A DNA stretch of 64,000 bases. Source: Blepharisma stoltei ATCC 30299 (taxonomy: Eukaryota > Protista > Ciliophora). The stretch's first letter is position 1, and the number at the start of each line of letters is the position of its first letter. Below the pieces are notes generated by a model. The model was given only the letters and a program-made list of their open reading frames with translations, had not been told where the DNA came from and ran no database searches. Positions 2,618 through 54,643 of the stretch are shown here, piece after piece. The stretch covers positions 1 to 64,000 of the forward strand of contig CBFDEM010000038.1 in the NCBI GenBank assembly GCA_965603825.1, read 5' to 3'. Position numbers and translations under genes: made by a program.

Positions 2618-2897
2618 GTTAAGTGTTCCTTTTCAGTTGTAAAAAGAGTGATTTTTTAATATAAGGTTAGTCAGCCTTGGAGATTGATAAATTCGTCCAT
2701 AAGTAATTGCATTTTGATTTCTATAAACTTTAATAATGGAACTAGACTTCAATCAATATTTATATGCTAAACCTTGCGCATGAGTATTTATTTTTCTAAT
2801 TCACAAAGGTGGTATCCTATTAATTTAAGCTAAAATATTCTTTATTTTAGAAATAAAAGAAAATTTGCATTATCCGAACAATTTAATAATGAATTTT

Positions 2898-8669: not shown

Positions 8670-10763
8670 ATGGAGCTTATGCAATGTTTCGAGCAAGGGT
8701 GCAAGAACGAGGTTGAATACTCATGCCCATGCACATCTCCTGAAACTCTATCCTGCGTACAGCATATTGGGGAGCACATGAAACTTCCTAATAGAACTCA
8801 TGTTCCCAACTTCATTTTTGTAGAGCCATGCAAAGGGACAAAAGAAGAAATTCTTAAGTTTCTCACAAGAAAAAAATTAAAAAATAGCAAGCTGAAGGGA
8901 AAGATGCTAGCATCCTTTAGCAAGCGTTTGCTAGAATCAGAGGACGATATTGAAGAACTCTTAAAAAATTTGGATTCATATTCAGCTGAAATAAGTGATT
9001 ATTTGACAAAAATTTCTCAAGCTCAAAAATTATCAAAATCAGAGCAAGACCCGATTTTAGGATTATTGAATTTGCAACCTGATGAAGCTATTGAGAAATT
9101 AAAAAAAATTATTCCGACCAATCAAGAATGGTCCAAAAGTGCAAAGCTATTTTGTGCTCTCGGTGAAAAAATTGAAAAAACGATTGAGTGTATTATTGAA
9201 GACAAATTTGAAGCTTATTTAGATAAAAGACTGTCTAATGTAGAAAACACTCTTCAAGAGCACAGCAAAATTATTAAATCAGTCAATGAAGAGCATAAAA
9301 AGAGCATTGATTCAACGAACGATCAGATAGCAAACATCAAAGAATCTATTTCTAAACTAATAAATGAGAATGAAAAGAGCAAGAGAGACTTAAAAGACTG
9401 GAAAGAAGAAATAATGCTTAACACAAAAAATGAAATAGACCTGTCTAATTCTCAAATTATTAAAATAAATCAAGATAATGAAAAGAGCAAGAGAGACTTA
9501 AAAGACTGGAAAGAAGAAATAATGCTTAACACAAAAAATGAAATAGACCTGTCTAATTCTCAAATTATTAAAATAAATCAAGATAATGAAAAGAGCAAGA
9601 GAGACTTAAAAGACTGGAAAGAAGAAATAATGCTTAACACAAAAAATGAAATAGACCTGTTTAATTCTCAAATTATTAAAATAAATCAAGATAATGAAAA
9701 GAGCAAGAAAGACTTAAAAGACTGAAAAGAAGAAATAATACTTAACACAAAAAATGAAACAGACCTGCTTAATTCTCAAATTATTAAAATAAATCAAGAT
9801 CTCAGCAAAAGTTAATGAATTTCTAAAGTCTCAAAGCATTCAAGAGCTAAGAGAGAAGAGCTCTGAAATTTTAAATAGACCAAATGACCCAGAATTAGAG
9901 CAAGACTTTAGGAGAACCTGCTCAAAGTTCAGTAGCGATGTCTGTGTTGATCAGCAAGCTTATCAAGATTATACTAATGCTTATCGCCAAAAAACATCTC
10001 TTTATACAATTATAAAGAAAGACAACAGAACTAATTTGTTTATTTATGATACAGAGAATGATAGTAAAGAAGTAAGGATATTAGAGACTCCTGAACCACT
10101 GGATTGAAGCACTTGCATTGCTCAGCTTCCTAATGGTAATTTATTTTGCTTTGGCAATAACCAACCTTCTGGAGTTTCATTGATAATTGATGAGAATTAT
10201 AGAGTCCGGCAGCTGCCATCTGGAACTCCTTGTAGTGTTCATCAGCTATCTATTTCAATAATAGTCTTTATTGCTTTGGAGGATCAAAAGATTATAATAT
10301 TTTAACTCTATCAGAGAGATTTGATTTAAATGAAAACCGATGAATTAAATTAAAGCCACTGCCACAAGCTGATTACCTTTGCACTAGTGTAATATTTAAC
10401 GGGAATATTGTGATTTCTGGAAGGAATAATAAAAATCTTTTGAGGTATTCAATTGGTAGCAACACTTTCGCAACAATTCCTTATGATTTTCAAGCTAATA
10501 AATACAAGATTCTTATAAGTGCAGAGAGACTGTATTTAATTGAATGTGAAAATGGATCAATCTATGAAAGCGAATTGTCAAATGATACTGCCTGGAGACG
10601 AATTGGAGACTCAATAATAGATTATTTTTATCAAGTTTATTTGTCATATAATAAAGGAGGAATAAACATTGCAAACTATTATGATGTTAGTTATCCTATT
10701 CGTTACTTCAAGTTTAATTTAGAGACGAAAAGATTAACTAAGTTGGATGAAATAAGATTATAA
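8670..10763 (+). pseudogene. Zn-finger (B-box-like) - coiled coil - 36-aa repeats - Kelch-like propeller gene, two frameshifts
   Basis: N-terminus CFEQGC...YSCPC...LSCVQHIGEH, then coiled coil, then blades with YCFGG and RFDLNENRW (W = TGA). Frameshifts at ~9810 (+1) and ~10236 (-1) relative to paralogs. Confidence 0.85.
9369..9800 (+). repeat. Coding tandem repeat, 4 x 108 bp (36 aa, NEKSKRDLKDWKEEIMLNTKNEIDLSNSQIIKINQD)
   Basis: Units start at 9369, 9477, 9585 and 9693 and are near-identical. Unit 4 has TGA where units 1-3 have TGG. Confidence 0.95.
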
Positions 10764-26821: not shown

Positions 26822-29240
26822 ATGGAGATTTTTCCTGAAGAGTTAACAAAAGTTTTTACAGTTAAGGATCACTTGAATGGTGGATCTTATGGAACGATCT
26901 ATAAAGCCATAAAGAAAAGTAATTTTTATTTCAGGCAATGGAAAAATGTATGCAATAAAGGCTGTAGCCAGAGCTAACACAGAGCCAAGCTGGAATGGCA
27001 TTGAAGTTGATGTGCAACCGTCAAGCTGGAAGGATATTGAAACTGAGATGCAAGTGCTCTCATGGGCCAATCCATATAAGCTTCAACTAGACTCCTTTTT
27101 TGTTAAAGGCGACACTTTCTTCATGGTCATGGATTATTGCCGAAATGGCGACCTTCTTAAAGCCATAGTTGATAAGATTCATGCCCATGAAATGTTTGAA
27201 GAAGACGAAATCTGAAAATATTTTATCCAGATCAGCTTTGGGCTCGAGTCTTTGCACTATAACGGATTTATCCATCGAGATCTTCATCTACAAAATATCC
27301 TTTTAGATGAAAATAGAGATATTAAAATAGCTGATTTTGGCATTTCTCGCTATTTACAGTCAAATGCAAATAATGGAGTTAAGGCTTACTGGTCTCCTAG
27401 GACTCATAGTGGAGGTCTTCAGGCTAAAGAAAGCGATGTTTGGGCAGTCGGCTGCATTTTATATTATCTCTGCAACCTTGAGCATCCTTTTGGCAAAAAT
27501 AAGAATAAAATAAAATATGAGCCTCATAAGCCGATAAGAAGTGAATACTCGAATGATTTGAGGTATTTCGTTGATCGGTGCCTACAAAAGCAGCGAGAAG
27601 ATAGGCCAACAATAGTTGATATCTTAACTCATGAGTTTATAGTCAACAAAACACTAAGCTTAGGCATTACAATTCCACAAACATCTGCTATGAATGAAGC
27701 TATTCATAAAAAGGAAATTGAGTCGCTTAGAGCAGAAAATGCTCGCTTAAAGGTAATAAATGAAAATAAAAAGAGCGAGAAAGACCTCAAAGACAGGAAT
27801 GACGACCTGCTTAATTCTCAAAGAAATAAGATTCCTCAAGATCATATCAAAAATAATGAAGCAGAAAAAGCCCAAAAGATCCAAGAGCTAAGAGAGAAGA
27901 GATCTGAAATTTTAAATAGACCAAATGACCCAGAATTAGAGCAAGACTTTAGGAGAATCTGCTCAAAGTTCAGTACTGATATCTATGCTGATGACCCAAC
28001 TCTTCAGCAAGCTTACCAAGATTATACTAATGCTTATCGCCAAAAAACATCTCTTTATAAAATTATAAAGGATTATGAGAATAGGACTAATTTGATTATT
28101 TATGATACAGAAAATGATAGTGAGGAAGTCAGAATAGTAGAGACTCCGGAACCACTAGATTTTGGCACTTGTATTGCTCAGCTTCCTAATGGTAATTTAT
28201 TTTGCTTTGGTAATAGCCAACATTCTGGAGTTTCATTGATAATTGATGAGAATTATAAAGTTCGGGAGCTGCCATCTGGAACTCCTTGCGTTAACTCATC
28301 AGCTATCTATTTCAATAATAGTGTTTATTGCTTTGGAGGAAATTATAATTATGAAGATTTAACTCTATCAGAGAGATTTGATTTAAATGAAAACCGATGA
28401 ATTAAATTAGAGCCACTGCCAGAAGCTGATGAGAATTGCACTAGTGTAATATTTAACGGGAATATTGTGATTTCTGGATTTAATGAAAATCTTTTGAGGT
28501 ATTCAATTGGTAACAACACTTTCGCAGCAATTCCTTATGATTTTGAAGCTTATGTAGGCAAGATTCTTATAAGTACAGAGAGACTGTATTTAATTGAATA
28601 TGGTGGATCAATCTATGAAAGTGAATTGTCAAATGAAACTGTCTGGAGACGAATTGGAGACTCAATAATAGTTCTTTTTAATCAAGTTTATTTGTCACAT
28701 AGTAAAGGAAAAATAAACATCTCATTTTTTTCTATAAATGGTAGAGAATATTATTGTTTTGATTTAGATCAAAAAAACATTATTGATATCGCATTCTGTA
28801 GTGAGCATGTCTCGCTTAGAAGAGTAGGTAAAAAGATTGAAGCAAATAAATGAAATAGCCAGAATTTTAAGCTCGATTCTTCGTATCTGGATGAATGAAA
28901 TTTAAAAGGCAATACTCTGATCGATTTAGGAAAAAATCTAGAAGAAATTGAAAGATCTATCGAAGAATTAAAACTCTATCCAAACAATTATGATTCATAT
29001 CATAAAAAAGGTGACGCTTTTTATAATTTAGAAAGATATCTAGAAGCAATCGAATGCTATGACGAAGCAATCAAACTATATCCAAGTTATGCTTATTTTT
29101 ACATTGATAAAGGCAAAGCTTTTAAAAAATTAAAAAGATATCTAGAAGCAATCGAATGCTATGAGGAAGCAATCAAAGTCGATCCAGATGATGCTGATTT
29201 TTATTATACTTTATTCAAGCGATGCTGATTCTTACTATAA
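26822..29240 (+). CDS. NEK-like protein kinase - coiled coil - Kelch-like propeller - TPR fusion (further TPRs continue out of frame to 29649)
   Basis: ATG 26822 and a 16-nt intron at 26919-26934, then one frame with TGA=Trp. Motifs GGSYG, YAIK, EIWKYFIQI, HRDLHLQN, DFG and SDVWAVGC, then Kelch blades and TPRs. TAA at 29238 follows a TPR-unit deletion near 29208. Confidence 0.88.
26919..26934 (+). other. 16-nt spliceosomal intron GTAATTTTTATTTCAG
   Basis: Removal joins ...YKAIKK-S-NGKMYAIK in frame across kinase subdomains I-II. Introns of 15-16 nt are characteristic of heterotrichs. Confidence 0.92.
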
Positions 29241-36049: not shown

Positions 36050-39000
36050 TAGAAATCAGCCAGCTAAGTCCTTATGAATTTGCCTTGGTGTTAGGTAGAG
36101 CTACGCAGGATCAGAAAGGATGATAATAGAATTAGGAGGCATATCGGAGGTAAAAACAAAAATTAACAGCTCGTGTGAGATATCCTGACGATTGCTTATG
36201 GCTATATAAGCGCTGATAAAAAATATTTCTGAAGATTTTTATAACAAAAACTCAACTGGACGGAAGAAGTATAGGATAGGCTCCAATCATGATGAGATGA
36301 ACGGAATATAGAGCTTTTGGACAGAAGAAATTAACTCCTGCAAATTTTGGGTGAGGGAAGGAAATTGGAGAGACCTTTGAAGTGAGTGATAAGAAACTAA
36401 GAAGAAGCTAGAATAGCGGACAATTTAATAAAGGTTTTGCATAACCAAATCAATTTGGAAGGGTTGTCATATAAGCATGAGGTCTAAAACTTTGGTTTTA
36501 TCTAAACCCCTGTCTTGAGTGCCATGCAGTTTGACCAAAGTGATTTCGTTTAAACTTCTAGAGCTCCCGAGAAAAATATTGACACTATCAATGACTGTAC
36601 TAGAATCCGACAAGCTTGTGCCTTTTATAGAGTTGTTCATCCATTTATCTAGTGCATCAAAAGAGTTAGATATGCTGGAATTTATTTCTTCTTCATCATT
36701 AGTCGTATTCGATATATAAAGGCCTGCAGCAGTTATTGAAGAAACGAACAGACTTGAGTCCATAGTCTCAGTCCTATTAGCCACCAAATTTTCAGTGAAG
36801 TTCTTAATAGAAATGCTGCCTGTGTTATTTAGATAAACTATTAATTCCACTTCAATAAAAGCCCCATAGGAGTCATAGACCCTGCCAAGCAAAGTTGCTT
36901 CCCCTATAATGCCAAGCTTTATTGTGAATTTATTTTCTGTTGTTTTCGATATTAACGCTCTGGTGCTGTTTTCCAATTTTATGAAGATTTGATAGGATGA
37001 AGGCTCAATGCCTTCAGGGTCGCTCCATCCTGAAAATAATATCCCAAGTTTAGTTTCTAAAGTAATTCCTTCAGAATTGTTATCAATTTCGAAAGTTCCT
37101 CTATTTGGCGGGCAGTTAACATATCGTTTTAGAGACAGTTTTGTTTTTACATAAGTTTCTTTATCAATTACTGTCACTCTAAATTCATATTCTCTTCCAG
37201 GAGTTAAACTGAACTGTTTGATTGTAATCCCAGCTTGATCTGTGGGTGTTGTAGGAGTAAAGTCAGATTATTGGCTTCTCCTCAAGAGATAATTGTGCTC
37301 ATTTCGTTTTCTACATGAGCAAGAATTCTCAAAGGAGATGATCAGTCCAAAAATGGATATTTTGCTATGATATGAACTTTCGGGGCAATCCCTGGCGAAA
37401 CAAACACCCATGATTTTCAGTGACTGATGGATAATCAGTCAAACTAATAGTAAAATTGCAAATAAAGTAAGAATTCTTATTTCTTATTTCCAAATTAAAA
37501 GAATTTCCAGCGATTTCAACAAATTTGTCATAAATGCAACTTTTTTCAGTAAATTTTACAGATCCCTTCTCTAAAGGATATATTTCATCGCTTCCGTAAG
37601 TTGCAGTTAAATTAACAGTAACATAAGAATAAGAATAGGCCGTCGTGTCTGCACCTAAAACCATCAGATTAGGAGGTGGCGGAGTAGCAACAACTTTTAC
37701 ACTAGCAGAGCGAGTATAAGTGCCACGATTGAATAGTACGTTTACAGCCACAACTTATTCACCGAGTTTTGAAAATAAATAAGTAAACTCAATACCTGTC
37801 GTGCTGTAATATGTATCTTCAGACAACATTCTATTACTTTTTGCAACGCTTCAAGAAATTGAAGGATTTGCATCTAAGTCTATAAGAGTGCTTTTTTGAC
37901 ATTGGAATTTTAACTTTAATGGCCAGTCGGTACCGACATTGATGGTTTCTTTATTAGCTATAGAAATGGCTACTTCATCATATATCATGTTTACTGAAGT
38001 GGTAGATGAATCAGATTGGCCGAACTTGTCAGTTGTGGTCAAAGTTACCTCAAAGTAATTATGATCTTTTGCGCTCTCGCAACTTTCTAAGGTAATATTG
38101 GAAATTATTTGTTTTATATCACCAGAATAGCTCAAGAACTTGCTTAAATATCATATAGATGTAATATTTCCCATTCCCGTTGATCGAAATCTGTCAAGAG
38201 TCAATTCGCAAGAGCAGCAGATCGAGCCAATTTGAGAGACACTAGCTTTCGGCTTAGGGGATTTTTCCTCCTTGATGCTCATAGTTATATATGCAATATT
38301 AGTTTCATTAGTATTTAAGTCAGCAAAAACTTTTCAATGTATGTCAAGTATTCTGCACTGTCTTGAATATGGCCTCGGTAAATTTCCAATTCATTTTTAG
38401 ATATTTTGAAGCAAGAAGCGCTTTTTCCTAGGGAGATTATTGAATCTTTTGACAATATTTTGTCGCATTGAGCACTTCTCATTAGTGCAATATTCCTCTG
38501 TGAGAACTAATTGATTATATAATTTAATTTTGAGATAACTTATCTCAAAATAATATTTTATGCTTATCAATTCTTGATGAATCATCATATACTTTAAAAA
38601 ATCATCATAAAAAGCGTTAAAAGATATAGGATATAAATATCCTCGATACTTAACTTGAACAATTGAAGGTTTGTTACTAATCCTGTAGCTTGGATCAATA
38701 GAAAACGTAAATGAGCATGCGAAATTTTCATTGAAAGTGTTAAATGAGCATTCATTAGTGCTTAGCAAAAAATCTGTGCTATTTAATAATTCAATACTCT
38801 CAATAAAACCATGAATGGTGTTGATAATAAATTCTCCGCTTCAGTTTCCGACAATTACATTTTCTTGAGGTATAGAATGAAACCAATATAGCTCAGGGCT
38901 GTTCTCATAAGGAGTTCTAATACATTTAAGTTTATCTAAAGATAAGCAATGATTCTCAGCAAAAATACATTTTTCAATTCCTGAAGCTTGAGGAATGCAT

Positions 39001-42000
39001 TGAATACAATTTGTTTTTCCAAAATTGGGGCATATAGCACATAAAGGATCTTGGCAAATGTTACAAGTATCGTCTCTTATAATCCTTTATTGCAAGAAAT
39101 GGGACAACTTTTGCATTTATCATGCTCAACTGAATAAAATTCATTTATCTTGCACGGAGATAAGCAATCTCCTAAAGAAAATTCACAAGTTTCAAGGTTT
39201 TCCGGATCTTCAAGTTTATTTCCGCTATTCTTTCATATTTGAAGCTTATATAAAAACCCTTTAAAATGCGACTTTGAGCTTCTTCCTATAAAAAGAGTCG
39301 AATTCACCATATCTCTAAGTAGTAAATCTGGGAATCCTCGTGTTATTATTTCTCTGTTATTTGCATACGCTCATAAAGATTTTATAGAACTTTCGTACGA
39401 AACTGCGTAAGAGAGGTAAGTTCAGCCTCCAAAACTAATTCCTGATGCTTGAAAAGTAAAATTCTGAGAAAATCTGTCTTGCTGAGTTATTGACAAAGCT
39501 CCATTACTAACAAAAGTCTGTCTCCCTGCTCAAGAATGTCCCCATTTCCTTGGTTTCAAATTCACATCAAAAGCGAAAAAGTGTAAGAAAAATAATAAGA
39601 CTGCTCGATTTGGAGGAATTTCCATCAAAAAAGAAACCTCTGTCCTTTGCTAGCACTGGGTCTTCATTTTCAGGTGAATTAAAAGGGTTATATGAAGCCT
39701 TATTAGCCCCTGCAATAAACTTTCTATAAGTTTCGTTGAAATTATCCTTTGAATTTATTTCAGCAATTATGCATAGCTCTTTACCAATGCATTCTTCAAA
39801 CCCAGTTGGGTATTGGCCTAAACAGATATTATCTATTAATTTCCCTTTCACGCATTCTAAGCAAGGGAAGTATCCTTGGTCCATACAAGTTGAGCAGTAG
39901 TCCAAGTCACAATACTCACAAAAGACTTCAGAGCCATCTGTGATTAAAATAGCATTAGCGTCACAGGCACAATTTTTGTCGTTTAAATTATGAGCTCTAT
40001 CTATGCATTTGTAGCAATTTGAAGTATCAGAAAACCCTGAGAATCCTTGACAGAGTTGGCCATTACACGATTTGCAAAATGGAAATCTCACACAGGTAGT
40101 TTCGCATGATGAATTGCATTGCTTGCAGGCTGAGTCTTCTCAGTATTCAAATAGTTCGCAAGATCATAAACAATTATCGTCTTTATCAGGTTGGCAAACA
40201 CTTATTTCTTAATAACTGATAAAATCATGAACAGCACCTATATAAAGCTTAAAATTATATATGAATCCAGCGAAGCCTGGGTCTTCAATGACTAATTCGC
40301 TTGGAATACCTCAGAAATTGCTTTTATATTGAGATATTGAATTATGCTTTATATTATTTAATTAGCTAGAAATTGTTGTAGCTCCACTTGAATAAGACAC
40401 TGAAAATGATATATGCATCCAACTACTGTCAAAAGCTTCATGGGTAATCACTTATATATTTGCATCCAAAGGATCTTTTAAAGTAATATTCATAATGTGA
40501 CTGCTCGAAAACGTAAATTTACCCTCTTTTCTAATTATTATGTCTAATATTTTGCATGAACCCAAGTCGCTATAGAAAAAGAATGAGAAAGGTAAATGAT
40601 TTCTTCTGTTTTTACAAATCGATTGTTTCAAAATATAGTCCTCTCCCTTAGTTGCTGAGATTGGATCAAAATTCAGTTCTGGATCCTTGAAAAAATAATA
40701 CTGACTTCTATTGTTACCAGTTTTAAAAATATCATACTCTGCAAACTCTTTAGAAAATTCGGCAACTGCATATGCGTCTTCTTTATCATTTATATAGCTA
40801 TATGGATATTCATCAAGGTAGGCTAAGCCAACTAAAACCCCTCCTTTACAGTCAAACCATTTACCAGTGCTACAGATATCGCAATATAAAGCATCATATT
40901 ACTCGCATTTATGATCATATATAGTTTCCACAAAAATAGCATTCGTATCACATTCGCTTTACTGCCCCATGGGCTCTTTCTGTGCATTGCTCACAATACG
41001 ATGAATCGCTGAACCCTAAACAGTTTATGAATAATTGGTCTACACATATATTGAATGATGGAGCTCTTACACAGTTTAAGGTTCAAGAACTGCTGCAGGA
41101 TTTACAGTTACTGTCAAAGTACTCAGGCAGTTTGCAAAGGCTATACAATTTTTATCATCTCTTGATATACAGAAGATGCTGTCTAAGTCTGCACCTATAC
41201 CTTCAATTTGCCCATATATTGTTTAAAGTTAATTACAAAACTTGTAAAGCCAGAATCTGTGCCTTTCCCAATAAATAAGTGGCTTGGCTTGTCCCTAAAC
41301 AAATACTGTGAATAAGTATTGAGAGAATACTGCATGCCATTCATATAGGTTGAAATGGTTGTTGAGCCATTAAAATAACTGACGATAAGAGTGAATAAAT
41401 TTGAATCAGCTGAAGAAATGGTGCTAGATTCTGATAATAAAACTGACTGAAATGGATTAATCAGTAAGGCCTGGGCTGAAAAAAATTGGTAGGCAAAACT
41501 ATTCGGTTTTCTTTTTCTATAATATTTCAAGCTTCATAACTATTTATTCACAAAGCAATTGAAAATGTATGCGAGAAATAGAGAGGGGTATCAGAAACTA
41601 AGAATTGGCTGGAATTAAAGTGAAGTCCTCTTCCTTTAATTGGAACAGGGTCGCACTCTTCAGGATTTTCCAATAATTAAATGAGCTTGAGCTGCCTCAA
41701 GTTTTAAATACGTCATAAATTTCACTAAATTCCGCTTCAAATTCTGCATTGATTACCAAACAGGCCGAATCAAAATACTCATTCTCTTCAAAGCCATGAG
41801 GAATTTCGTCTAAACAAATCCCATTTTAAATAGCCACTTTCGCACTCCTTGCTATCGAAATAAGTTGCTTCACGCTTGTTCCAGGCTTTTCAGTAGCCGC
41901 TATCACATTTTTCACAAGCCCAGTCTATTTCATTTTTTACAAGAATTGAGTCAGGATTATAGATACAAACTAAACCTTGAAGACTGGCTACACATTCATT

Positions 42001-42654
42001 GCAAGAACTGTCACTGAAACTTGGGCACTTTATGGAAAGTCTATAAGAGTAAATATTGCAAAACTTGGGTCTTACAAATCAGCTTCAGCATGAATCGTTG
42101 CAAGTAGTGCAGTTATCGTCATAAAGCTAAAAACCTCAAGGTGATAGATAAGGCCTTTGTCTGTCAACTGCACAAATTGATTCGTCATTGTAAAGTGATA
42201 GATCGTTTATAGTACCAATAAATAGCTTAAAATCATAGATAAAGCCTTAAAATTAAAATTAGTTCCCCCATTTCCGATTATTAAATAATTTGAAATATCT
42301 CTGTTAAATATGCAGTCTCTAAGAGCTTTCTTGCTTGATTACCATTCAAAAACATAGCTATCGTTTTCATTCCGTTTAAAAAGCTTAATGATAATTAAAA
42401 TTGGCATCAACCACTTATAATAGATTGATTAATTGGTTCAACAATAACTCCATAAGTGGGACTGATCACAGTGATTGAAGAATAATCATTTCGTATCATA
42501 ATTCTATTATTTTTTGGAAAACAACTCTTCATCCATAGCTATCAATTCAGGAACTAATAGAAAATGAATGTGAAAATAAAGCGAGTCACAAATCAAAAAT
42601 TGGTTTCCATAAAAGTAAGGTCTTCTATCCTTTGCTGGGATTGGATCACATTCC
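36050..42654 (-). pseudogene. Giant Cys-rich (furin/EGF-like) + LamG-like repeat + REJ surface-protein pseudogene, 5'-truncated at the inverted-repeat element
   Basis: CxxC-rich blocks alternate with repeated (N)PExxDP(V/I)xAKxRGxxF modules (39640-39690, 41620-41670, 42610-42654). REJ motif NCPPNRGTF...GITLET...WSDPEG. Dozens of lesions. Confidence 0.75.
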
Positions 42655-42684
42655 TTAGATTATTACGTTTAGTAATACTAGTAT

Positions 42685-42909
42685 CACTAGCACCACTAGC
42701 ATCACTAGCAACACTAGCACCACTAGCAACACTAGCAACACTAACAACACTAGCACCACTAGCATCACTAGCAACACTAGCAACACTAGCAACACTAGTA
42801 CCACTAGCAACACTAGTACCACTAGCACCACTAGCACTACTAGCAACACTAGCACCACTAGCATCACTAGCAACACTAGCAACACTAGTACCACTAGCAA
42901 CATCAGCAA
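42685..42909 (+). repeat. Left arm (CACTAGCAA)n, about 25 units with variants
   Basis: Read directly from the sequence. Confidence 0.95.
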
Positions 42910-43057
42910 AGTAGTGTTAGAATTTACCAAAAGAGTAGAAAGAAGAAAATAGCATTTAAATTTCATATGAAATATATTTTAGATTTATAGAGATCTAACA
43001 TTACATAAACTCACTTTTGTTGATTGTTTTAACACGCTTTACACCTATTTCGTGTAT

Positions 43058-43309
43058 TTAAGTTGATTTTCTTTTCAAATTATCAGATTCCATAAGTGCT
43101 TTGATTTCCGCATAGTTCAGATTGTAATTTTGAGGTAAGAGCCATCTTTTAAAGTTTATTGATATTACGACATAAAATACGTCTACACCTGCAAAAACTG
43201 TGGGATTGCGTGATGCAATGTCAGGCAGCTTCTCTGTGAGCTCTTTATCTGATGGAGCAAGAAAAGAAAATCCCGCACTTTTAAATAGCTTCTCAATATA
43301 GTCAGCCAT
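43058..43309 (-). CDS. Orphan 83-aa ORF in the loop of the inverted-repeat element
   Basis: AAAATG start context, TAA stop, ordinary globular composition, AT-rich flanks. No family recognised. Confidence 0.55.
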   Translation of the reverse strand: MADYIEKLFKSAGFSFLAPSDKELTEKLPDIASRNPTVFAGVDVFYVVISINFKRWLLPQNYNLNYAEIKALMESDNLKRKST

Positions 43310-43419
43310 TTTAAATTATATTGTATTAAGTATATGACTAAATGTGCTGTTTATTTTCTAATCTATTATATTATTATTTTGGCACACAAAATAGTGTCAG
43401 TATTAAATGTCGCAAAAGA

Positions 43420-43755
43420 TTGTTGGTAGTGCTGCTAGTGTTGCTAGTGTTGCTAGTGTTGCTAGTGTTGCTAGTGTTGCTAGTGTTGCTAGTGTTGCTA
43501 GTGTTGCTAGTGTTGCTAGTGGTGCTAGTGGTGCTAGTGTTGCTAGTAGTGCTAGTGGTGCTAGTGGTACTAGTGTTGCTAGTGGTACTTGTGTTGCTAG
43601 TGTTGCTAGTGTTGCTAGTGATGCTAGTGGTGCTAGTGTTGTTAGTGCTGCTAGTGTTGGTAGTGTTGCTAGTGTTGCTAGTGTTGCTAGTGTTGCTAGT
43701 GTTGCTAGTGTTGCTAGTGGTGCTAGTGTTGCTAGTGATGCTAGTGGTGCTAGTG
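43420..43755 (+). repeat. Right arm (TTGCTAGTG)n, about 37 units with variants
   Basis: Read directly from the sequence. The order of variant units is shared with the left arm. Confidence 0.95.
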
Positions 43756-43798
43756 ATACTAGTATTACTAAACGTAATAATCTAACAGATATGCTGTA

Positions 43799-46700
43799 TT
43801 AAGCATTTTGGAATCCATAAGCCACTTATAAGACTTATTGAATCATCCTTCAATAAAGCCAATCTTGAAATACAAATTGGGACATTTTTTGACAAGATTT
43901 GGATACCTTTCTACGTTCCAAGCAAAAAGACAGCTTTATGGCCAGTGGCAAATTCGATTCTTTTATATCAATCAAATAAAGTAAGAGGAGAATTTTGTAT
44001 GTACCGTAACCAAATTCTTGGAAAGATAAAGGATTTAAAAATCCTTAGTGAAGAAGAGGCAAATAAAATAGATATTCAGCAATTCATAAATATTTAATAT
44101 CAGTTTAGAAATATCTATATTTAATTATTTCTTAGCTGATCAGTGACTTTTGATGGCATAGCGGCATTTGCAATACTATTTTATTTCTTTCTTGCCTTCA
44201 TCACTTATTCTTCCTAATAAATTGATTTTCTTTCACTCAAAATTTTATTCTATTTCATCTTTTGCTTGTCTGAAAAGGGGTGAAGTTGAACTTATACTGA
44301 TAGGGGTGTTTTCTATCAATTTTTTACATATAATTTTAAAGGAAAATTTTTGAGTTTTCAAGAAAAAGAGGAATCACTCCATAATTGCTATAAATTTGCT
44401 TATTTTCTTTGAACCAAGTGTATATTTCTATAGTCAATTATGAAATTATTATTGTAAAGATTCAATTTTTTTAATCTATTAAAGAAGTACTTATAATTTA
44501 CTATAAATCTAAGAACTTATCACTTATGAATGAATTGATTATTTCCAATTACATCTTTTTCTCCTATTATGAGGGTTCTATTTTGTTATCTCGAATTAAT
44601 GACAACATTGACAGTCTATCCAAAATAAATTATTTTAATTACAGAGCAAGATTTGAGTTGAAATAGTAAACCTATATCATAAACTGCAATCATATAGTAG
44701 ATTATTTCGCACTAAAATATCTAATAAGAGAGAATTGGATAAGCTGCATTCTGTTTAAAGTGATTGGAAAAAAGCCATTATTTTTTACTAATCTTAGATT
44801 TGATCTCCATCACTTGATAAGGATGGGTCTTGTTTCTATGTTTCTGTAAATTTAGGCATAGGATTTGTTTAATAGTCTATAATAATACCTAGACTTTCAT
44901 GTTTTGATAGAAAAGAATTATTCCTTTTCATTTTGCAACTCAAATTCATTGGATTATCTTAATTGCTTCACCAAAGCATTCTAAAGACTCATAAGCCTTT
45001 CCAATTTCATAATTTTTATTCCTTGCTTAGTTGCTTACCCAATAATATGAATACAAATTAAATATCTCAAAATACCTACTTGCCTTTAAAATTAATATAA
45101 TTTTTAATTGATGGAAGAAAGCTTCAGAAATATACAGAACATCAACGATCCAACCAATCAAGAAAATATCCCAATCGCTTCTGCTATTTCTAATGATAAT
45201 ATTCAAGCCCCTAATATTCAAAGTCAAAACCCAGCAGCTCCTGCCAACCTAGCAGGCGCATCTCACACTGATATCCAAATTGAAGACCAACAAATCTTAG
45301 CTGCTGCTAACAAAATCCGCTCAAATAACTCAGTGCTCCAATTTGAAGGTTTACAGTTTCTCAGACAATCCCTATCTAAACTTGATAACCCCACCTAGAG
45401 ACGATGTCATCAAAACAGGGATTTGCCAACATATCATTTCCTTGGCATACGAAAAAGATGACGATAAATTTTTATTTGAAGCTACATGACTATTTACAAA
45501 TATTTTGTCAGGAAGCTCAGAGCAGTGCTCTTATTTGCTAAATCTTGGTGTGCTGCCTTTTTTGTTTACTGTTTTTAAGAAAAATAATTATGATATTAAA
45601 GAGCAGGTGATATGGGCTTTTGGAAATGTCGCTGGAGACTCAGCTGAATTCAGAGATACAATTTTAAGCCACGAAAAATTCAATTATGTTTATGAGTTTT
45701 TGGCTGGAGTCGACTTTTATAAGCCGAGTTTGATAAAGATGCTGTCATGAGCAGTATCAAATTTCATTTTGGGAAAGCCTCAACCCAAACCTGACAAGGT
45801 GTTACCCTTATTTTCATTTCTAGAAAGAGTCATCTTGGTGATTCATGATGTAGACGCTCTTACAGATGCAACCTGGGGATGTTCCTGTCTTACAGATATA
45901 GATGGAAGTTTACCAATTTTCCAAAATGAATTATTTTTAGAAAAAATAATTCAGCAGCTCTCCAGTTATAATGCTTCTTTACAAATTTCTTCCCTCCAGA
46001 CACTTGGCAGTATTTCATCAGACTTGGATTTTTAGAAAAAATTGGCGAATTAATTTAAGTCCCAACATAAAGGTAAGAAGAGAAATCTGCTGAATGCTGT
46101 CAAATATTTGTACAGAAAAAAAAGAAGCTGTTGAAGGGCTATTAGAAAGAAAAGTTTATGAGAAATTATTGAAGGTATTAAAAGAAGATAGTGAAGATGT
46201 TAAAAAGGAAGCTATATGGGCAATCGGAAATACAGCTACAGTTTGTGATGTAGAGCAAGCTAGAAGGGTCGCCCAAATAGGGTTGATTGGAGAAATGATA
46301 AGTTTGCTAGATAAAATGAAAGCGTCACAGAAAGTTGCACTTGAAGGGCTGACTGAATATTTTGAAAAAGATAAAAATATTGTGGGGAGTGAGGAAAGAA
46401 GTAGGCTGATTGGGATGTTGGATAGAATGATTGAGGAAGGTGAAAATTCTGCAAAGGCAGTGAGCTTGAGGTTAATGCTGATTGATATCAATAATAGTGA
46501 GGGGAATAATTAATACATTTAATCAGATGTTAGCTTGGAACAATTATTAGCTGCACGAAACATAGAAAGTAGATTAAATACAAAAAGAGCTTAATTTATT
46601 ATGAATATCTTTAATATAATCAAATCTTAACCCTTTATTTGGTATCTTCGTCAATCAATTCTAACTTTTCCTCTGAAAATTGATAATAAAAACTCGATTT

Positions 46701-47143
46701 ATTTCAAATTTTCAAGTCGAAAACCTGCTTTTAAAAACAGCAGAGCTTTTACAGCATCTGCTTTTAAAATCTAATTTAATATAGATATCCAAAATATATT
46801 GTTTAATAGCTGAGCTTATATTAATAATAATTTAATAACCAGAATTAAATGCATTTTAAATGCAAAGGAGCTCTATTCAAGAATTCATCAGTAGGGAATT
46901 AATAGTGATTATTACATTAGACTCAGCTAAAACAGTAAAGCAATTTTTCCTATATAAAAATGGAGAGCAGAAAGAATTTAAAAGAACTTGAAAACATAAA
47001 AATAGAAAACAAGTGAGACTTGCTTCTTTTTCAAATCATCACTATTACTAGTGATATCAATAGCAAACTCAAAGAAATAGAAAGCAGTTTAAACATTATA
47101 AATATCTTAATAGATGAGATAGCTGAGATTTTGAGTAGACCAA
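43799..47143 (+). repeat. Segmental duplication, copy 1 (partner 50821-54722): RAP-like 3' end, TPR remnant, importin-alpha, start of Kelch-family gene
   Basis: Colinear DNA similarity from ttaagcattttggaatccat to gctgagattttgag(t/c)agaccaa, including intergenic DNA. Confidence 0.92.
45111..46513 (+). pseudogene. Importin-alpha-like ARM repeat gene, copy 1, frameshifted
   Basis: FEATWLFTNILSG, KEQVIWAFGNVAGDS, DATWGCSCLTD and KKEAIWAIGN. Frameshifts at ~45395 and ~46020-46065. Confidence 0.85.
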
Positions 47144-47329
47144 GCGGTCCCTTCAAACCACGCCTCTTTCAATAGTGACTTTATTTTTACTTATTATTTT
47201 TTGCATTATTTTTTTCCTATTTTTTCACATATCTGTTTTTGTCCTACTCTAAAGAAAATTATAAATTGGAATATTTATTTAAAAAATATTATTAAAATAC
47301 ACTAATTTTTTTCTCGCGGAGAGAGGAGC

Positions 47330-47480
47330 AAGCACATTTTACTTGAGAATCATTTTAGATTAATCCAGATTACAAAGGAGTTATGATTCTCAATCAAGAA
47401 ACTCAGAGATATTGGCAGGATTTTGACTATTTTATACATTTTGGAATAGAAAAGACACTTATCAACCATATTGAATAATG
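47330..47480 (+). pseudogene. Third fragment of the RAP-like gene 3' region
   Basis: ttttacttgagaatca...ccagattacaaaggagt...tattggcaggattttgactatttt matches ~50720-50865. Confidence 0.85.
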
Positions 47481-47960
47481 ATTCGGCTCTTTTATATCAC
47501 TCAAATCTTTTAAAGGGAGAATTTCTAATGCACCGAAATCAAATTTTTAGAAAGGTAAATGATTTGAGAACAGCTAGTAAGGAAGATACGAATAAGATAG
47601 GAAAATAGATATAAAGCAATTTCTTAGTAGGGATGGACTGCCATATAGAGTCAATAGGTCCGAACTCTCTTGTAGAGCTGGCAGAGCCATGCAGATCTAG
47701 CTTATTTTGGTCAACACACATACCCATTTTATATGAAATTCAGTGACAAAAATCAGCTTTCTAAACATACTTGACTTATAACATGATTTAAAGTTTTATT
47801 CATAAAATAATTAGTGAACATTATTTTCTCCAATCCTACTGGTTAATTGAATGCTGCAATAATAATTTAGCTGCAAATCATTAATTATTATAGTCATTCT
47901 TAAATCCTTTGTGTCTATGGTTGATAATTTTTTCAATATTCTCAATTATCTGGTATATAA

Positions 47961-50900
47961 ATGCTGAGGCTAAGGTTTTTTGCCAAAGGATTCTCTCGCT
48001 CGTTTTCAGAATTTCCAAATCACTACAAAGCAGAAAAAGCTCAGATAGATCTAAAACTTGCAAGTGCTAAAACTTTAGATTCATTTATAAACGATATAGA
48101 CTTGTCCAAAACTTCTCATTCAATGCTTGCATACACACTTGCAAAAGTTTATAAGGAAAATCAAAAAATCGACCCAGAAGCATTAAGAAAGCTTTTCAAA
48201 ATTAGAGATGAAGTTAAAGAGAACATTGCAAAACTTGATTTTCAAGGCATCGCCAATTTTTGTGATTGATATAGTAGTTTAACCACAAAAATATTTCTAG
48301 CAAAAGAGACGAAGAAATTATTAATTGATCGCATAAATAAGTATTTAATTAGTCACTCTTTTGACCGGAAACAAATTTTATCAATCTATGAAAATTTAAC
48401 ACCTGAAGGGTTTAGAATAGAAGAACTAGATAGAGAGATTAAAAAAATTGCGATGAGCAAATTAAATTTGGAAGAAATTTCAAAAATTTTGACCGGATGT
48501 GGAAGATTTATCTATACTTCAAACATAAGTTTATTTTTTGCTTGCATGGAAAGATTATTTCAACTAAATAAAGAAGAGCTTGATGGAAAACACTTAGCCA
48601 AAATTTTAGATGCTTTAGCTATTAAACAGCCTGCAAAAATACATCATTATTTATCAGATTTTGTAAAATTTATTGAAGAAAGCTTATCTAGATGAGAAGA
48701 AAATGACTTATTATCAGTAATCAGGTTCTATAAGTATTACAATTCTGGCTATAGGATTCCATACCAAATCGCACTAAAAAGACTGAATATCTTGCTTAGT
48801 AATGATCAATCCATAGAATTTATAATTGAATTGGCTAGTCTTTTAAAAAATCACCCAATTATTTATTTTATTGCTGATAACATAGCTTTAAAAGGTTTAC
48901 AAATAATTAAGGAAAAACTTTCAAAAGAATCAATAGACTTAGAAAATATAAAAAAAATACTTAGGCTTATAGGCCCGAATATTGATTATCAGACTGCACT
49001 TGCATTAGCAGACCAAATAAATAGTAAAACCCTTTATTTTGAACAAGGCATGGAAATGATTGAAAAAGCATCATGATTATGTGTTAATAAAGAAGGGAAG
49101 CTTTTCCCTTTGGCAAATTTAATTTCAAATGAAATAAACTATAAAAGAATTAAAGATCTTGAGTTTCGTTACAAAATAGATGCATTATTCAGCATTATTC
49201 ATATAAATAATTTTGAGCTATATGGCCTGCAAAAACTAAAAGATTTCCTTATAGATGAACTAAAAGAGTGAATTGCTTTAAGCGGTGACAATATTAAGCT
49301 TTTTATAAATCTTGTTTACGATAAAGAATATAGTTCAAAGTTTTGTAGAGCAATAAAGCCTTTACAAGCCATAGCTTTTTGCTCAATAAAAAAATTATCT
49401 AAGGAATTTGATTGATTACATTATTCGATTATGCTTTATGAGTCTGATCCTGAAAAATGAAAAGACTTTGTGATTGAAAATAAAAATAGCTTTTCATATG
49501 AAGATATATTAAGAGCAATAAGATATTATAAAGGACCTTTTGCGGCAATTATATTTTTGTTGCAAACATATAAAAATAAGTTATTTCCGCAATGGATAGG
49601 TGCAGCCATGGATAGAATTCCTGAAAAGGAAAATGCTCAAGTTCTAAATGATTTTGCTCGTATTCTAAACAAAATAGACCCTCATTATTTAGTATATGAA
49701 GATAGTATCATCACTAGAATGGATAATTTTGGTTATTTTTTTAGGAATTCCGACTTTAGTTTACTGCCAGATTTATTTGATGACGCATATAAATTGATAA
49801 AGGACCTGCCTATTGATTCTGTCTTTAACAATTGAAATATCAAAATACTCAGCCATGTGTCACGGCTTGGCAAGTTAGAACCGGAAATGGCTGATTCTGT
49901 TGTATCTAACTATGCTTATATGAAGGAGCTTGATCAATTACCCATGCTGACTATTGCTTCAAAATGCACTGATTTGGAGCTGAGAAAAAATATAATCAAT
50001 AAAGTTTTCAATGGGAAACACATTCATTTTTTACTTCCTCTCATTATTAAGGCATACTGATGTCATCCAAAAACAGAAGAAGTTGATAATTATATTATCG
50101 ATATATTAAAAAAAATTGTTCCACTTTTAGGAAAAAGTTGTCTCTCAATTCTGGGAAATGTAATTGCCAAACTTCACCAAAAGAATATAAATGAACATTT
50201 AGAGCTATATAATGCAATATCATCCTTATTAAAAGAATTTGTTTTAAATAATGTAGAAAAATTATCATTCGGAGATCTTAATGTATTGCTGCATTTAGCT
50301 CTGATAAATATGCCCATGGATCTTAATTTTGCTCAAATAATATGGCAGAATAGTAAGAATAATAAATTGCCTAGTAATGAGTACAAAAGAGTAGACATTA
50401 TTGAAAAAATAAAAGCAATAGGATTATCTGACAAAAATGCAGTTTTAGCAATTTGTAATAAGCAATATAACTTTAGAGCAGCTTATTTAGCAGAAACTAT
50501 TTCATGTTTGGCAGAATTAAGATTTGAAAATGAGAGTTGGGCTAAGAAAATGGCTAACGGATTAATGGATTATGTGGAAGATAAAAAGATTTCCTTTGAA
50601 AATGATAAAGAGCACATCAACTGGATATATGGGCTTGTTGCTTTTAAAGCAAATAAGTCAGAAATTATGAGACATTTAGAAAACTGTAAATTTTTTGATT
50701 GTGAATTGCCAACTTTTAAGCACTTTTTACTTGAGAATCACTTCAGCATGGACCCAGATTACAAAGGAGTGAGATTTCTCAATCAAGAGATACAAAAATA
50801 TTGGCAGGATTTTGACTATTTTAAGCATTTTGGAATCCATCCGTCACTTATCAGACTTATTGAATCGTCGTTCAATAAGGCCAATCTTGAAATACAAATT

Positions 50901-51119
50901 GGAACATTTTTTGACAAGATTTGGATACCTTTCTACGTTCCAAGCAAAAAGACAGCTTTATGGCCAGTGACAAATTCGGTTCTTTTATATCAATCAAATA
51001 AACTAAGAGGAGAATGTTTTATGTACCGTAACCAAATTCTTAGAAAAGTAAGCAATTTGAAAATGCTTAGTGAAGAAGAGGCGAATAAAATAGATATTCA
51101 GCAATTCCTTAATATTTAA
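47961..51119 (+). CDS. Intact 1052-aa helical protein with putative mitochondrial presequence and C-terminal RAP-like domain
   Basis: Six track ORFs share one frame and join through 8 TGA codons with no TAA/TAG. N-terminus MLRLRFFAKGFSRSFS. The C-terminus IWIPFYVPSKKTALWP...KLRGECFMYRNQIL resembles RAP. The product call is inference; the ORF itself is solid. Confidence 0.85.
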
Positions 51120-52096
51120 TATCAGTTTAGCAATATCTATATTTAATTATTTTCTTAACTGATCAGTGACTTTTGATGACATAGCGGGCATTTGTAATAT
51201 TACTTTATTTCTTTCCAGCCTCATCATTTATTCTTTTCCTTATAATTTCATTTTCTTTCACTCAAAATTTTATTCTATTTCATCTTTTGCTTATCTGAAA
51301 AGGAATTATACTGATAGGGGTGTTTTTCAAATATAATTTTAAAGGAAAGTTTTGAGTTTCAAGAAAAAGAGTAATCGCTCCATAATTGCTATAAATTTGC
51401 TTTATTTTCTTTGAACAAAGTGTATATTTCTATAGTCAATTATGAAATTATTATTGTAAGATTCAATTTTTTAATCTATTAAAGAAATGCTTATAATTTA
51501 CTATAAATCTAAGAACTTATCACTTATGAATGAATTGATTATTTCCAATTACATCTTTTTCTCTTATTATGAGGGTTCTATTTTGTTTTTTTGAATTAAT
51601 GACAACTTTGGTAGTCTATCCAAAATGAATTATTTTAATTTCAGAGCAAGATTTGAGTTGAAATAGTAAACCTATATCATAAAACTGCAATCATATAGTA
51701 GAATATTTTGCACTAAAATATCTAATAAGAGAGAATTGGATAAGCTGTACTCTGTTTAAAGTAGTTGTAAAGCTATTTTTTTTTACTAATCTTAAATTTG
51801 ATAAGCATCACTTAATAAGGACGGATCTTGCTTCTATGTTTCCGAAATTTAGGAAGAGGATTTGATTAATAGTCTATGATAATGCCTAGCTTTTCCATAT
51901 TTGATAGAAAAGAATTATTCCATTTCCATTTTGTAACTCAGAATTCATTGGATCAATCTTAATTGCTTCACCAAAGCATTCTAAAGACTCACAAGCCTTT
52001 CCAATTTCATAATTTTTATTCCTTTGGCTAGTTGCTTACCTAATAATATGAATACAATTAAATTACTTACCATTAAAATTAATATGATTTTTAATA

Positions 52097-53593
52097 ATGG
52101 AAGAAAGCTCAGAAATATGCAGAATGCAACGGTCCAACCCCTCAAGTAAATAGCTCAATCGCTTCTACTATTTCTAATGATAAAATTCAAGCCCCTAATA
52201 GTCAAAGCCCAACTCAAGCAGCTCCTGCCAACTCAGCAGATGCATTTCACACTGATATCCAAATTGAACACCAACAAAACTTAGCTGCCGTTAGCAAAAT
52301 CAGCTCAAATAACTCAGTGCTCCAATTTGATGGTTTACAGTTTCTCAGAATATTACTATCTAAAGTTGATAGCATCTCACTTAGAGACGATGCCATCAAA
52401 ACAGGGATTTGTCAGCATATCATTTCCTTGGGATACCAAAAAGATGACGATAAATTTTTATATGAAGCTACATGACTATTTATAAATATTTTGTCAAGAA
52501 CTTTAGTGCAGAGCTCTTATTTGCTAAAAATTGGTGTGCTACCTTTTTTATTTACAATTTTTGAGAAAAATAATCATCAAATTAAAGAGCAGGTGATTTG
52601 GGCTTTGGGAAACGCTGCTGGAGACTCTGCTGAATGCAAGGATACAATTTAAACCATGAAAAATTCTGGAGTGGAGTTTCATAAGCCTAGCTTGATAAGG
52701 ATGTTGTCATGAGCAGTATCAAATTTCATAAGAAGACAACATCGGCCCGAAGCCAGCAAGGTGGTACCTTTATTTTAATTTCTACAAAGAGTCATTTTGG
52801 AGATTGATGATGTAGAAGCCCTTACAGATACAACCTGGGGATGCTCAGTTCTTACAGAAATAGACAGAAATTTACAAATGTTCCAAAATGAATTACTCTT
52901 CCTAAATTAACTTATTTTTAGCTACGTCATTATAGTGGCTTATTTCATTAAAAAATATAAAGCACTCTATATATCTCTGAATAGTATATTTTTATAGAAA
53001 TTAATTCAGCATCTCCCAGTAATAATGGTTCTTTGCAAAAGCTTTCTCTCCGAACACTTGGCAATATTTATCACCATTGCCAAGTTTATACGAAATTATG
53101 GTCGGACTTGGATTTTTAGAAAAAATTAGCGAATTAATTCTAAGTCCAAAAAACTGTAATAAGAGAAATCTTGTGAATACTGTCAAATATTTGTACAGTA
53201 AATAGAAGCCGTTAAACTGCTATTAGAAATAAAAGTTTATGAGAAATTATTGAAGGCATTAAAAGAAGACCGTAAAGATGCTAAAATTGAAGCATTATGG
53301 CTAATAAGAAATACAACCACAATTTGTGATGAAGATCAAGCTGAGAGTGTTGCCCAAATAGGCTTAATTGGAGAATGATAAGTTTGGTAGATAAAATGAA
53401 AGCGTCACAGAAAATTATGTTAGAAGGGCTGACTGAATATTTCGAAAAAGATGAAAATAATGTAGGAAGTGAGGAAAGAAGTAGGTTGATTGGGGTGTTG
53501 GATAGAATGATTGAGGAAAGTGAAAATTCTGATAAGGTAGTGAGCTTGAGGTCAATGCTGCTTGATATCGATAATAGTGATGAAGATTATTAA
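52097..53593 (+). pseudogene. Importin-alpha-like ARM repeat gene, copy 2, degraded
   Basis: KEQVIWALGNAAGDS and DTTWGCS. Many frameshifts and a TA-bounded insert. Confidence 0.85.
52894..52988. other. TA-bounded IES-like insert (91-93 bp)
   Basis: Absent from the paralog (gaatTAttttta at ~45928). AT-rich. Ends TACTCTTC...GAATAGTA form a 7/8 inverted repeat. Confidence 0.65.
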
Positions 53594-54643
53594 TATATTT
53601 AATCAGATATTAGTTTGGAATAACTATAATAATATCAGCAATGTAAACAATAGGGATCATATTTACAATTATTAAATATGGTTAAAAAAAGATATTGCAA
53701 GCTATTTAATATAACGCAGAGCACTTATACTTAATTTGATGAAAAATTATTATGCATTGCTTTAACTTATTGCTAAATCTATGACTCACCTCATTATCTC
53801 ACGTTTATAATTAATACCTTTGCCTATCTAAATATTAATTTCTTTATAAATTATAGCTCATATTTATTAATTTATACTGATTGAAACGAAAAATTGAAAG
53901 GATTTTGGAAATGGATTTTTCAAATAATTCGTAGAATGAATAAAACTTCTAAGCGAATTAGAAGTTACTTTTAATTAGCTGCTTTAAAAAATTAGCAGGT
54001 TCAAATATTAATAGTTTGATTTAATTTTTAAATATCATCTTGACTTACTTAAATTGTGGAGTTAGCTGCACGAAATGTAGAAATTTGATTAAAATACAAA
54101 AAGAGCTCAATTTATTATGAATATCTTTAATATAATCAAATCTTAACCCTTTATTTGGTGCATCTTCAGGCGTATATTGAATTTAACTATTTTAAATTCA
54201 GTTTTCAGTGCAGCTCATTGCAATAAGTTTATCTTCGGCAATCAGTACTAACTTTTCTCTAAAAATTGGTAATAATAATAAAATCGATTTATATCGAAAT
54301 TTGATAGTCGAAAAATGCTTTAAATAAACGGTAGAGCTTCTAGATCATCTGCTTTTAAAATATAATTTAATTTAGATCACCAAAATATATTGTTTAATAG
54401 CTGAACCTACCTTAATAATAATTTTAAAACCTAGGATTAAATGCATTTTAAATACAAAGGAACTCTTATTCAGTAGGAAATCAAGTAATTATTGCACTAG
54501 ACTCAGCTAATGAAGTAAAAAAAATTTTCCTTGATAATAATGGAGAGCAGCAAGAGTTTAAAAGAGCTTAAAAATATAACAATAGAAAGTGAGTCAAACT
54601 TTCTTAATTCTCAAATGAGCACCATTACTAATGATCTCGATAA

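Follow-up and report, generated by a model that had tools for sequence, protein, structure and literature searches.

Palindromic duplications with gene conversion from arm to arm are familiar from the human Y chromosome and from the inverted repeats of plastids. The arms of Y-type palindromes are more alike within a palindrome than between palindromes and enclose a unique spacer with genes; such palindromes arise by inverted duplication and promote rearrangement. Among ciliates, the Tlr elements of Tetrahymena are large, Maverick-like, gene-rich and limited to the germline, and their inverted repeat consists partly of tandem 19-mers. The title of Wells et al. (1994), as cited in PMC5182062, presents Tlr as a small family of ciliate elements that have long inverted repeats and lie close to DNA rearrangement sites. 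Foldback transposons follow a scheme of outer unique, tandem-repeat and middle domains, with few complete copies, duplications of 8–10 bp and an involvement in rearrangements (PMC4079207). The somatic (MAC) genome of Blepharisma stoltei ATCC 30299 comprises 41 Mbp at 66% AT, has CCCTAACA telomeres with many alternative telomere-addition sites and many alternative minichromosome forms, reads UGA as Trp, contains introns of 15–16 bp and is largely, although not completely, without mobile or junk DNA (PMC9942806). Bogo/BogoMITE, BstTc1 and the palindromic families rnd-1_family-87/160 of this species are all germline-limited; BogoMITE measures ~389 bp and has TAA/TTA duplications, while BstTc1 encodes a DDE transposase and carries a 10-bp GGGAAGGACT array of 5–42 copies that does not lie in inverted arms (PMC9942856).

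The palindrome described here lies in a window of 64,000 nucleotides with a GC content of 33% (positions 1 to 64,000 of contig CBFDEM010000038.1, assembly GCA_965603825.1; C38 in what follows), which was translated with UGA as Trp and UAA and UAG as stops. Its inverted arms occupy 42655–42909 and 43421–43785 (~254 and 365 bp; Table 1), and the repeat finder reported their complementarity as 254 nt at 91% and 240 nt at 94%. TRF resolved the arrays within them into 9-bp periods of 25.1 copies on the left and 38.1 on the right. Folded as single-stranded DNA, the element gives −355 kcal/mol, with a stem of ~250 bp.

A sequence-only reading of the window had described a foldback-like architecture, and most of its description stands: there is a unique outer terminus, the tandem-repeat arms are unequal, the loop given as ~510 bp measures 511 bp (42910–43420) and holds an 83-aa ORF, and no transposase domain was found in the palindrome with Pfam. 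A second copy exists elsewhere, and the flanks vary from locus to locus, as is expected of a discrete unit. The claim that the arms share the order of their variant units at different copy numbers was borne out by a unit-by-unit layout, in which the order is common to both arms over 13 + 8 units, with 25 units on the left against 38 on the right, where six units are added mid-arm and the loop-proximal run is longer; the arms also differ at 6% of positions. Two details had to be corrected. The terminal inverted sequence, reported as unique and 30 bp long, is indeed an exact inverted pair, but of 28 nt, and it occurs a third time in the genome, on contig C49 with three mismatches. The TA reported at both ends is present, but each is part of the inverted repeat itself and not a duplication.

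Table 1. Features of the C38 palindrome and its flanks, in window coordinates.
Feature	Position	Strand	Remarks
Left flank: 6.2-kb 5'-truncated fragment of a REJ-domain, Cys-rich receptor-type gene	36431–42658	−	C36 paralogs
Left unique terminal inverted sequence	42655–42682		28 nt, exact reverse complement of 43758–43785
Left 9-bp array, 25 units, CACTAGCAA on +	42677–42902	−	Inverted copy of right-arm ORF, (Ala-Ser-Val)n, without start codon
Loop, left part, downstream of 83-aa ORF	42910–43060	−
83-aa ORF, stop 43058–43060	43061–43309	−	Publicly annotated orphan, probably a truncated remnant
97-bp spacer between divergent ATGs	43310–43406
Right-arm ORF, 131 aa	43407–43802	+	MSQKIVGSAAS-(ASV/ASG/ASD)n-DTSITKRNNLTDMLY, then stop
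Right 9-bp array, 38 units, TTGCTAGTG	43421–43763	+
Right unique terminal inverted sequence	43758–43785
CAGATAT, 7 nt past the inverted repeat	43786–43792	+	Common to the C49 copy
Right flank: last ~100 codons of a paralog of the 1052-aa gene at 47961–51116	43799–44094	+	First, truncated unit of a ~7-kb repeated block

The locus resembles Drosophila FB, Tetris, Galileo and the sea urchin TU elements in its long inverted arms, each composed of a unique outer domain and tandem repeats further in, in arms that are unequal and vary by copy, in a middle domain without transposase, in the small number of complete copies and in its association with breakpoints. It differs from elements of the FB type in that it has no target duplication of 8–10 bp, does not carry the terminus at all ends and is built from a coding 9-bp minisatellite instead of non-coding repeats of 10–220 bp; moreover, only two palindromic somatic copies exist, and the mobility of the palindrome is putative. 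With Tetrahymena Tlr it shares, as far as the title of that report goes, long inverted repeats in a ciliate near rearrangement sites, but at 1.1 kb, in the somatic genome and without Tlr-type genes it is a different structure. The Blepharisma germline elements have the host in common with it, together with the short-unit array of BstTc1 and the small palindromic IES families. No sequence relationship to Bogo/BogoMITE, BstTc1 or rnd-1_family-87/160 was seen, and the repeat units, duplications and germline limitation differ, in agreement with the earlier statement that the locus does not resemble the termini of Bogo or BstTc1. As in the palindromes of the Y chromosome and plastids, similarity between arms is higher within a copy and the unique spacer carries genes; unlike those palindromes, which span kilobases to megabases, the C38 arms are 0.25 kb of minisatellite whose unit number drifts.

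The 9-bp unit corresponds to three codons, and four of the six array frames are open. The right arm constitutes a complete, ATG-initiated (Ala-Ser-Val)n ORF on the + strand, which stands head-to-head with the 83-aa ORF. The left arm, read on the minus strand, reproduces this ORF from about codon 5 to ...DTSITKRNNL; it is placed downstream of the loop ORF and ends five codons short of the right-arm stop. The two arms are thus one ORF and its inverted duplicate, a relationship that the sequence-only reading had missed; the inverted repeat spans most of an ORF and is not a transposon end. A single site of the 9-mer accounts for nearly all variation in the arrays (13 of 36 and 13 of 24 units), and variation so concentrated does not identify the reading frame. 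In the diverged relatives on contigs C23 and C34 no array frame has stayed open, each array ORF having several frameshifts, and no differently encoded (ASV)n relatives were found in the 41.5-Mb somatic genome. Ala-Ser-Val might nevertheless be the coding frame, as the start codons and a shared ...I(T/L)KRN... tail with different Arg codons hint. The 131-aa ORF is intact on C49 too and has no entry in public protein sets, whereas the 83-aa ORF has one; both window ORFs have A-rich start contexts.

The 83-aa ORF had been called an orphan gene. An exhaustive HMMER search returned no relative other than the ORF itself among 1.84 billion representative proteins, and an exact-protein contig look-up gave no match. 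Between C38 and C49, the ORF differs by seven nonsynonymous codon changes and one synonymous change, and its level of substitution (4.0%) is similar to that of the non-coding loop (2.7–3.8%); the C49 ORF also carries a frameshifting 1-bp deletion at codon 47. The best-conserved part between these copies is the 97-bp spacer, with three substitutions in 111 columns. Compared with C34, C38 differs at 10/44, 9/44 and 14/45 sites in codon positions 1–3 and at 45/150 sites in the adjoining 'UTR', a divergence that is level across the three codon positions and the neighbouring non-coding sequence. The C23 and C34 frame extends ~19 codons past the C38 stop to a shared stop, and positions 43004–43057 of C38, which keep this frame beyond its TAA, correspond to the C-terminal residues of C23 and C34 (…GVKRVKTINKSEFM, stop); the 83-aa ORF was thus truncated from a longer ancestral ORF. 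Of the other copies, that on C23 has lost the N-terminal half and is interrupted by an in-frame TAA, and that on C34 is in two pieces and carries a frameshift. The 83-aa ORF is probably a decaying orphan with no sign of purifying selection: the lack of relatives is real, but the ORF is unconstrained, truncated and broken in every other copy.

Structure prediction, suggested earlier as a check on the 83-aa ORF, produced only poor models (AlphaFold pLDDT 48.6; ESM Atlas 0.52). The ESM Atlas contained no family for it, and its helix-turn-helix-like neighbours reached only a TM of ~0.5 with that poor model. Two candidate identities were discarded: a tandem-repeat protein proved to be a spurious summed HMMER match, and the Pfam match to CCDC32 was sub-threshold, the ORF belonging to no Pfam family. 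On the C23 minus strand (192921–193310), the Thr-Ser-Asn frame of the array is continuous with the frame that encodes the C-terminal half of the 83-aa homolog (…TSNTTKLTALVSQASLALTAGVDIFNVII, stop), which may reflect a former fusion ORF or chance.

The loop, arms, terminus and 9-mer were searched against the 41.46-Mb somatic assembly of 64 contigs. The sequence-only reading had proposed separate searches with terminus and loop to look for other copies, target duplications and longer autonomous versions; further copies were indeed obtained, but neither a target duplication nor a longer autonomous version. Four loci exist in total, two palindromic (C38 and C49) and two diverged with a single array (C23 and C34), and no transposase is linked to any of them. 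The palindromic copy at C49:66742–67499 has a loop 96% identical to that of C38 and short arms of ~10 and 13 units (98 nt at 92%), and it sits 115 bp from a telomere; its left arm ends 22 bp short of the terminus, where it is joined to a local 117-bp duplication. At C23:192671–193365, which is intergenic, one array is fused directly to the left part of the loop. The C34 module is split, with the left loop part at 75406–75704 and, at 78623–79290, a degenerate array head-to-head with the first codons of an 83-aa homolog, the ATGs ~21 bp apart; this second piece is centred in a 2.5-kb inverted duplication of the 3' end of a channel-like gene. C23 and C34 share the module only (91% and 77%), their flanks being unrelated. 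Scans of metagenomes with the terminus or the conserved loop core revealed no copies outside this genome.

Arm identity is 94.1% within the C38 copy and 94.5% within the C49 copy, compared with 88–91% between copies, and some variant units are copy-specific, occurring in both arms of one copy and being absent from the other. The palindrome would thus predate the split between C38 and C49, its arms having since been homogenised at each locus. The shared order of variants and the excess of within-copy over between-copy identity are features of palindromic segmental duplications.

The fragments on either side of the palindrome have paralogs that document where each was cut. The REJ domain of the left flank (E = 8.6e-17) belongs to a region 84–92% identical to two places on C36, where the paralogous gene has ~2.4 kb (~790 codons) more beyond the junction, up to an ATG followed by a signal-peptide-like sequence; the C38 frame meets stops at the element edge. 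From 43799 the right flank is 84–89% identical to several C38 blocks, including the window from 50821 onwards, in which the 1052-aa-type gene is followed by an armadillo-repeat gene to complete the ~7-kb block. Flank homology stops 0–14 bp from the unit ends, each flank paralog running on at the junction into its own upstream sequence, and the 20 kb after the C36 paralog contain nothing similar to the right block. On each side of the unit at the REARRANGEMENT junction there is therefore a 5'-truncated gene fragment that points away from it, and the two genes are unrelated. On C49, the neighbour on one side is a Kelch-family fragment that contains an in-frame stop and breaks off at C49:66738, four bases before the unit, and on the other side stands a 117-bp direct copy (96%) of C49:65985–66101 with the telomere added directly after it. 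Junction microhomologies of 2–4 nt are compatible with breakage or template switching, of which they are no more than a hint in DNA this rich in AT.

Several other duplications were recorded in the course of these comparisons. The two 117-bp copies on C49 (65985–66101 and 67499–67615) bracket the Kelch fragment and the palindrome, and the second ends exactly at the telomere-addition site. The ~2.5-kb inverted duplication on C34 comprises the 3' end of a cation-channel-like gene, with 532-nt arms (77686–78217 and 79621–80152) at 94% and more degenerate inner parts. The REJ-type region occurs twice on C36 (13206–19489 and 77934–80963), ~58 kb apart and in opposite orientations; both match the left flank at 88% identity and score equally, which points to a large inverted duplication within that contig. 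The ~7-kb block with the 1052-aa and armadillo-repeat genes is repeated in tandem at window 43799–53627 and recurs 90–110 kb further on, in both orientations, at C38:133000–156000; the complete 1052-aa gene straddles the junction between units of this block.

The explanation that we favour, and to which we would give about an even chance of being correct, is that the palindrome is a small, decaying two-gene cassette that underwent an inverted duplication and now lies at a rearrangement junction. The starting point would have been an ancestral head-to-head pair of small genes, one of which carried a coding 9-bp minisatellite. Inverted duplication of the minisatellite ORF would have created the palindrome before the C38 and C49 copies arose; conversion between arms would then have kept them alike while slippage let their unit numbers drift. 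On single-stranded DNA, the ~250-bp stem could stall replication or provoke a break at its base, to which end-joining or template-switch repair would bring ectopic sequence. This replication-stalling and template-switch step is one that we infer. The DNA around the hairpin-prone palindrome is telomere-proximal and rich in duplications, and the cassette would end up there as a discrete block among pieced-together gene fragments, without transposition; its coding content is probably no longer needed.

This explanation draws on the head-to-head pairing of the ORFs, which recurs in the diverged C34 relative, and on the inverted duplications at related loci, namely the 532-nt, 94% palindrome round the C34 array and the C36 paralog pair in opposite orientations. 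Set against it, a mobile element would likewise give a unit of ~0.7–1.1 kb that recurs at four unlinked loci, fairly sharply bounded and each time between unrelated flanks. Many further copies, or an autonomous partner, could reside in the germline genome, and the two intact window ORFs could be expressed.

Among the alternatives to a decaying cassette, a non-autonomous foldback-type element, as the sequence-only reading had proposed, is possible but unlikely. A transposase whose gene lies elsewhere, probably in germline-limited DNA, would recognise its termini, the tandem-repeat arms would lengthen and shorten, and ectopic recombination between copies would have made the chimeric flanks. The outer unique, tandem-repeat and middle domains and the few complete copies fit the published scheme, and FB-like elements are known at rearrangement breakpoints (PMC4079207); arm length differs by copy (25/38 against ~10/13 units), the four loci have unrelated flanks, and a low somatic copy number is to be expected where the somatic genome is depleted of mobile DNA. 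Tandem-repeat inverted arms are a foldback hallmark found here; a terminus at all ends, a target duplication and an empty site are not. The flanks at C38 (...CACATTCC and CAGATATG...) have no common direct repeat, C49 likewise shows no target-site duplication, and no empty site exists in the paralogs of either window flank, of the C49 flank or of the C23 locus. The left end of C49 lacks the terminus. CAGATAT follows the right inverted repeat in both palindromic copies, and on that side the unit thus reaches further than the repeat; termini running into shared flanks at other loci had been named beforehand as an observation that would speak against an element, and over these 7 nt this is, on a small scale, what was found. 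Furthermore, the arms are an ORF and its inverted copy instead of non-coding repeats, the diverged relatives have a single array and other distal ends, and searches of the somatic genome found neither a related transposase nor further termini.

These negatives do not settle the matter, since target duplications and empty sites would both be lost if copies of an element recombined with each other. With no duplication, no empty site, two palindromic copies only and one C49 end without the terminus, the proposal of a new mobile element was nevertheless not upheld. We consider unlikely the fuller version in which a foldback-type family has its main population and autonomous partner in the germline-limited genome, with its palindromes driving ectopic recombination, truncation and perhaps telomere-proximal breakage; in a variant of this version, the arms would also yield hairpin RNA for small-RNA pathways. 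If such a germline-limited family exists, it would be, to our knowledge, the first foldback transposon described in a ciliate, and one met at breakpoints of the somatic genome.

The same stem and ORFs might instead be functional, with ~250 bp of double-stranded RNA processed to small RNAs, or with the ORFs expressed as a regulated pair and the arm acting as a regulatory or terminator structure. The long, near-perfect stem, the two intact divergent ORFs with A-rich starts and a well-conserved 97-bp spacer, the public annotation of the 83-aa ORF and the 22-nt and 24-nt small-RNA classes of B. stoltei (PMC9942856) would all suit such a locus. We think it improbable, however, since the loop ORF is unconstrained and none of its other copies is intact, Rfam has no match for the locus, and only two such loci exist, one of them degenerate. 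A non-coding RNA family was also considered as such and rejected, Rfam giving only far-sub-threshold, miRNA-like matches on the repeats.

A retained, inefficiently excised palindromic IES has a very small probability. The TA dinucleotide at both ends, the palindromic repeat families among Blepharisma IESs (PMC9942856) and a somatic genome that is not wholly free of mobile DNA (PMC9942806) make it worth considering; yet excision would fuse two truncated, unrelated gene fragments and restore nothing, the consensus somatic assembly contains the sequence at two loci, and the known palindromic IES families are ~150 bp long and unrelated in their sequence features (PMC9942856).

Palindromes are a known class of assembly artefact, and the C49 copy lies at a contig end, which could point to a fold-back chimeric read or to two chromosome ends collapsed via a shared element. 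An artefact is extremely improbable given arms that differ in unit number and at 6% of positions, and an independent locus on C49 with the same architecture and 96% loop identity; an element of 1.1 kb should also be spannable by HiFi reads.

The window has a telomere of its own: 325 copies of the 8-bp TAACACCC, a permutation of the species telomere unit, form a 2.6-kb tract at 15–2617 with 95% matches. Variant units are scattered through the first ~200 bases of this tract, which is long for a somatic ciliate telomere as assembled. Beside it, window 2616–3225 is 77% identical to C49:65000–65686, ~2 kb inside the C49 telomere and in the same orientation to the chromosome end; these subtelomeric blocks appear to be paralogous, with different telomere-addition points. 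Elsewhere in the window there is a 108-bp tandem repeat of four copies at 98% (9369–9800), and TPR-like repeats of 102 bp lie at 28924–29203.

A telomere relationship of the 9-mer of the arms was tried and rejected, for 43% of shuffled 9-mers align to a CCCTAACA array as well as CACTAGCAA does and the true 8-bp telomere is in the same window. It had been pointed out that the C/A-rich strand is 5' at both ends of the palindrome; this is true (the left arm is 39% A and 35% C), but any skewed inverted repeat shows such polarity automatically, and it is uninformative. The proposal of telomeric arms or an integrated linear mini-replicon, with degenerate telomeric repeats pointing outwards, accordingly falls away: although that polarity and a C49 copy only 115 bp from a real telomere would accord with it, its probability is practically negligible with a 9-mer that is not telomere-like, arrays that are capped by 28–39 nt of unique sequence and are open reading frames, and a real telomere in the window that is built from a different unit.

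A low-copy palindrome that lies between broken genes on C38 and beside a telomere on C49 offers a place to study how rearrangements originate in this lineage, and it bears on whether inverted repeats are fragile sites in a germline–soma system. If the palindrome is mobile, it would add a new type of transposon to the ciliate repertoire. If it is not, a coding minisatellite combined with an inverted duplication mimics a foldback transposon, which calls for caution in repeat annotation.
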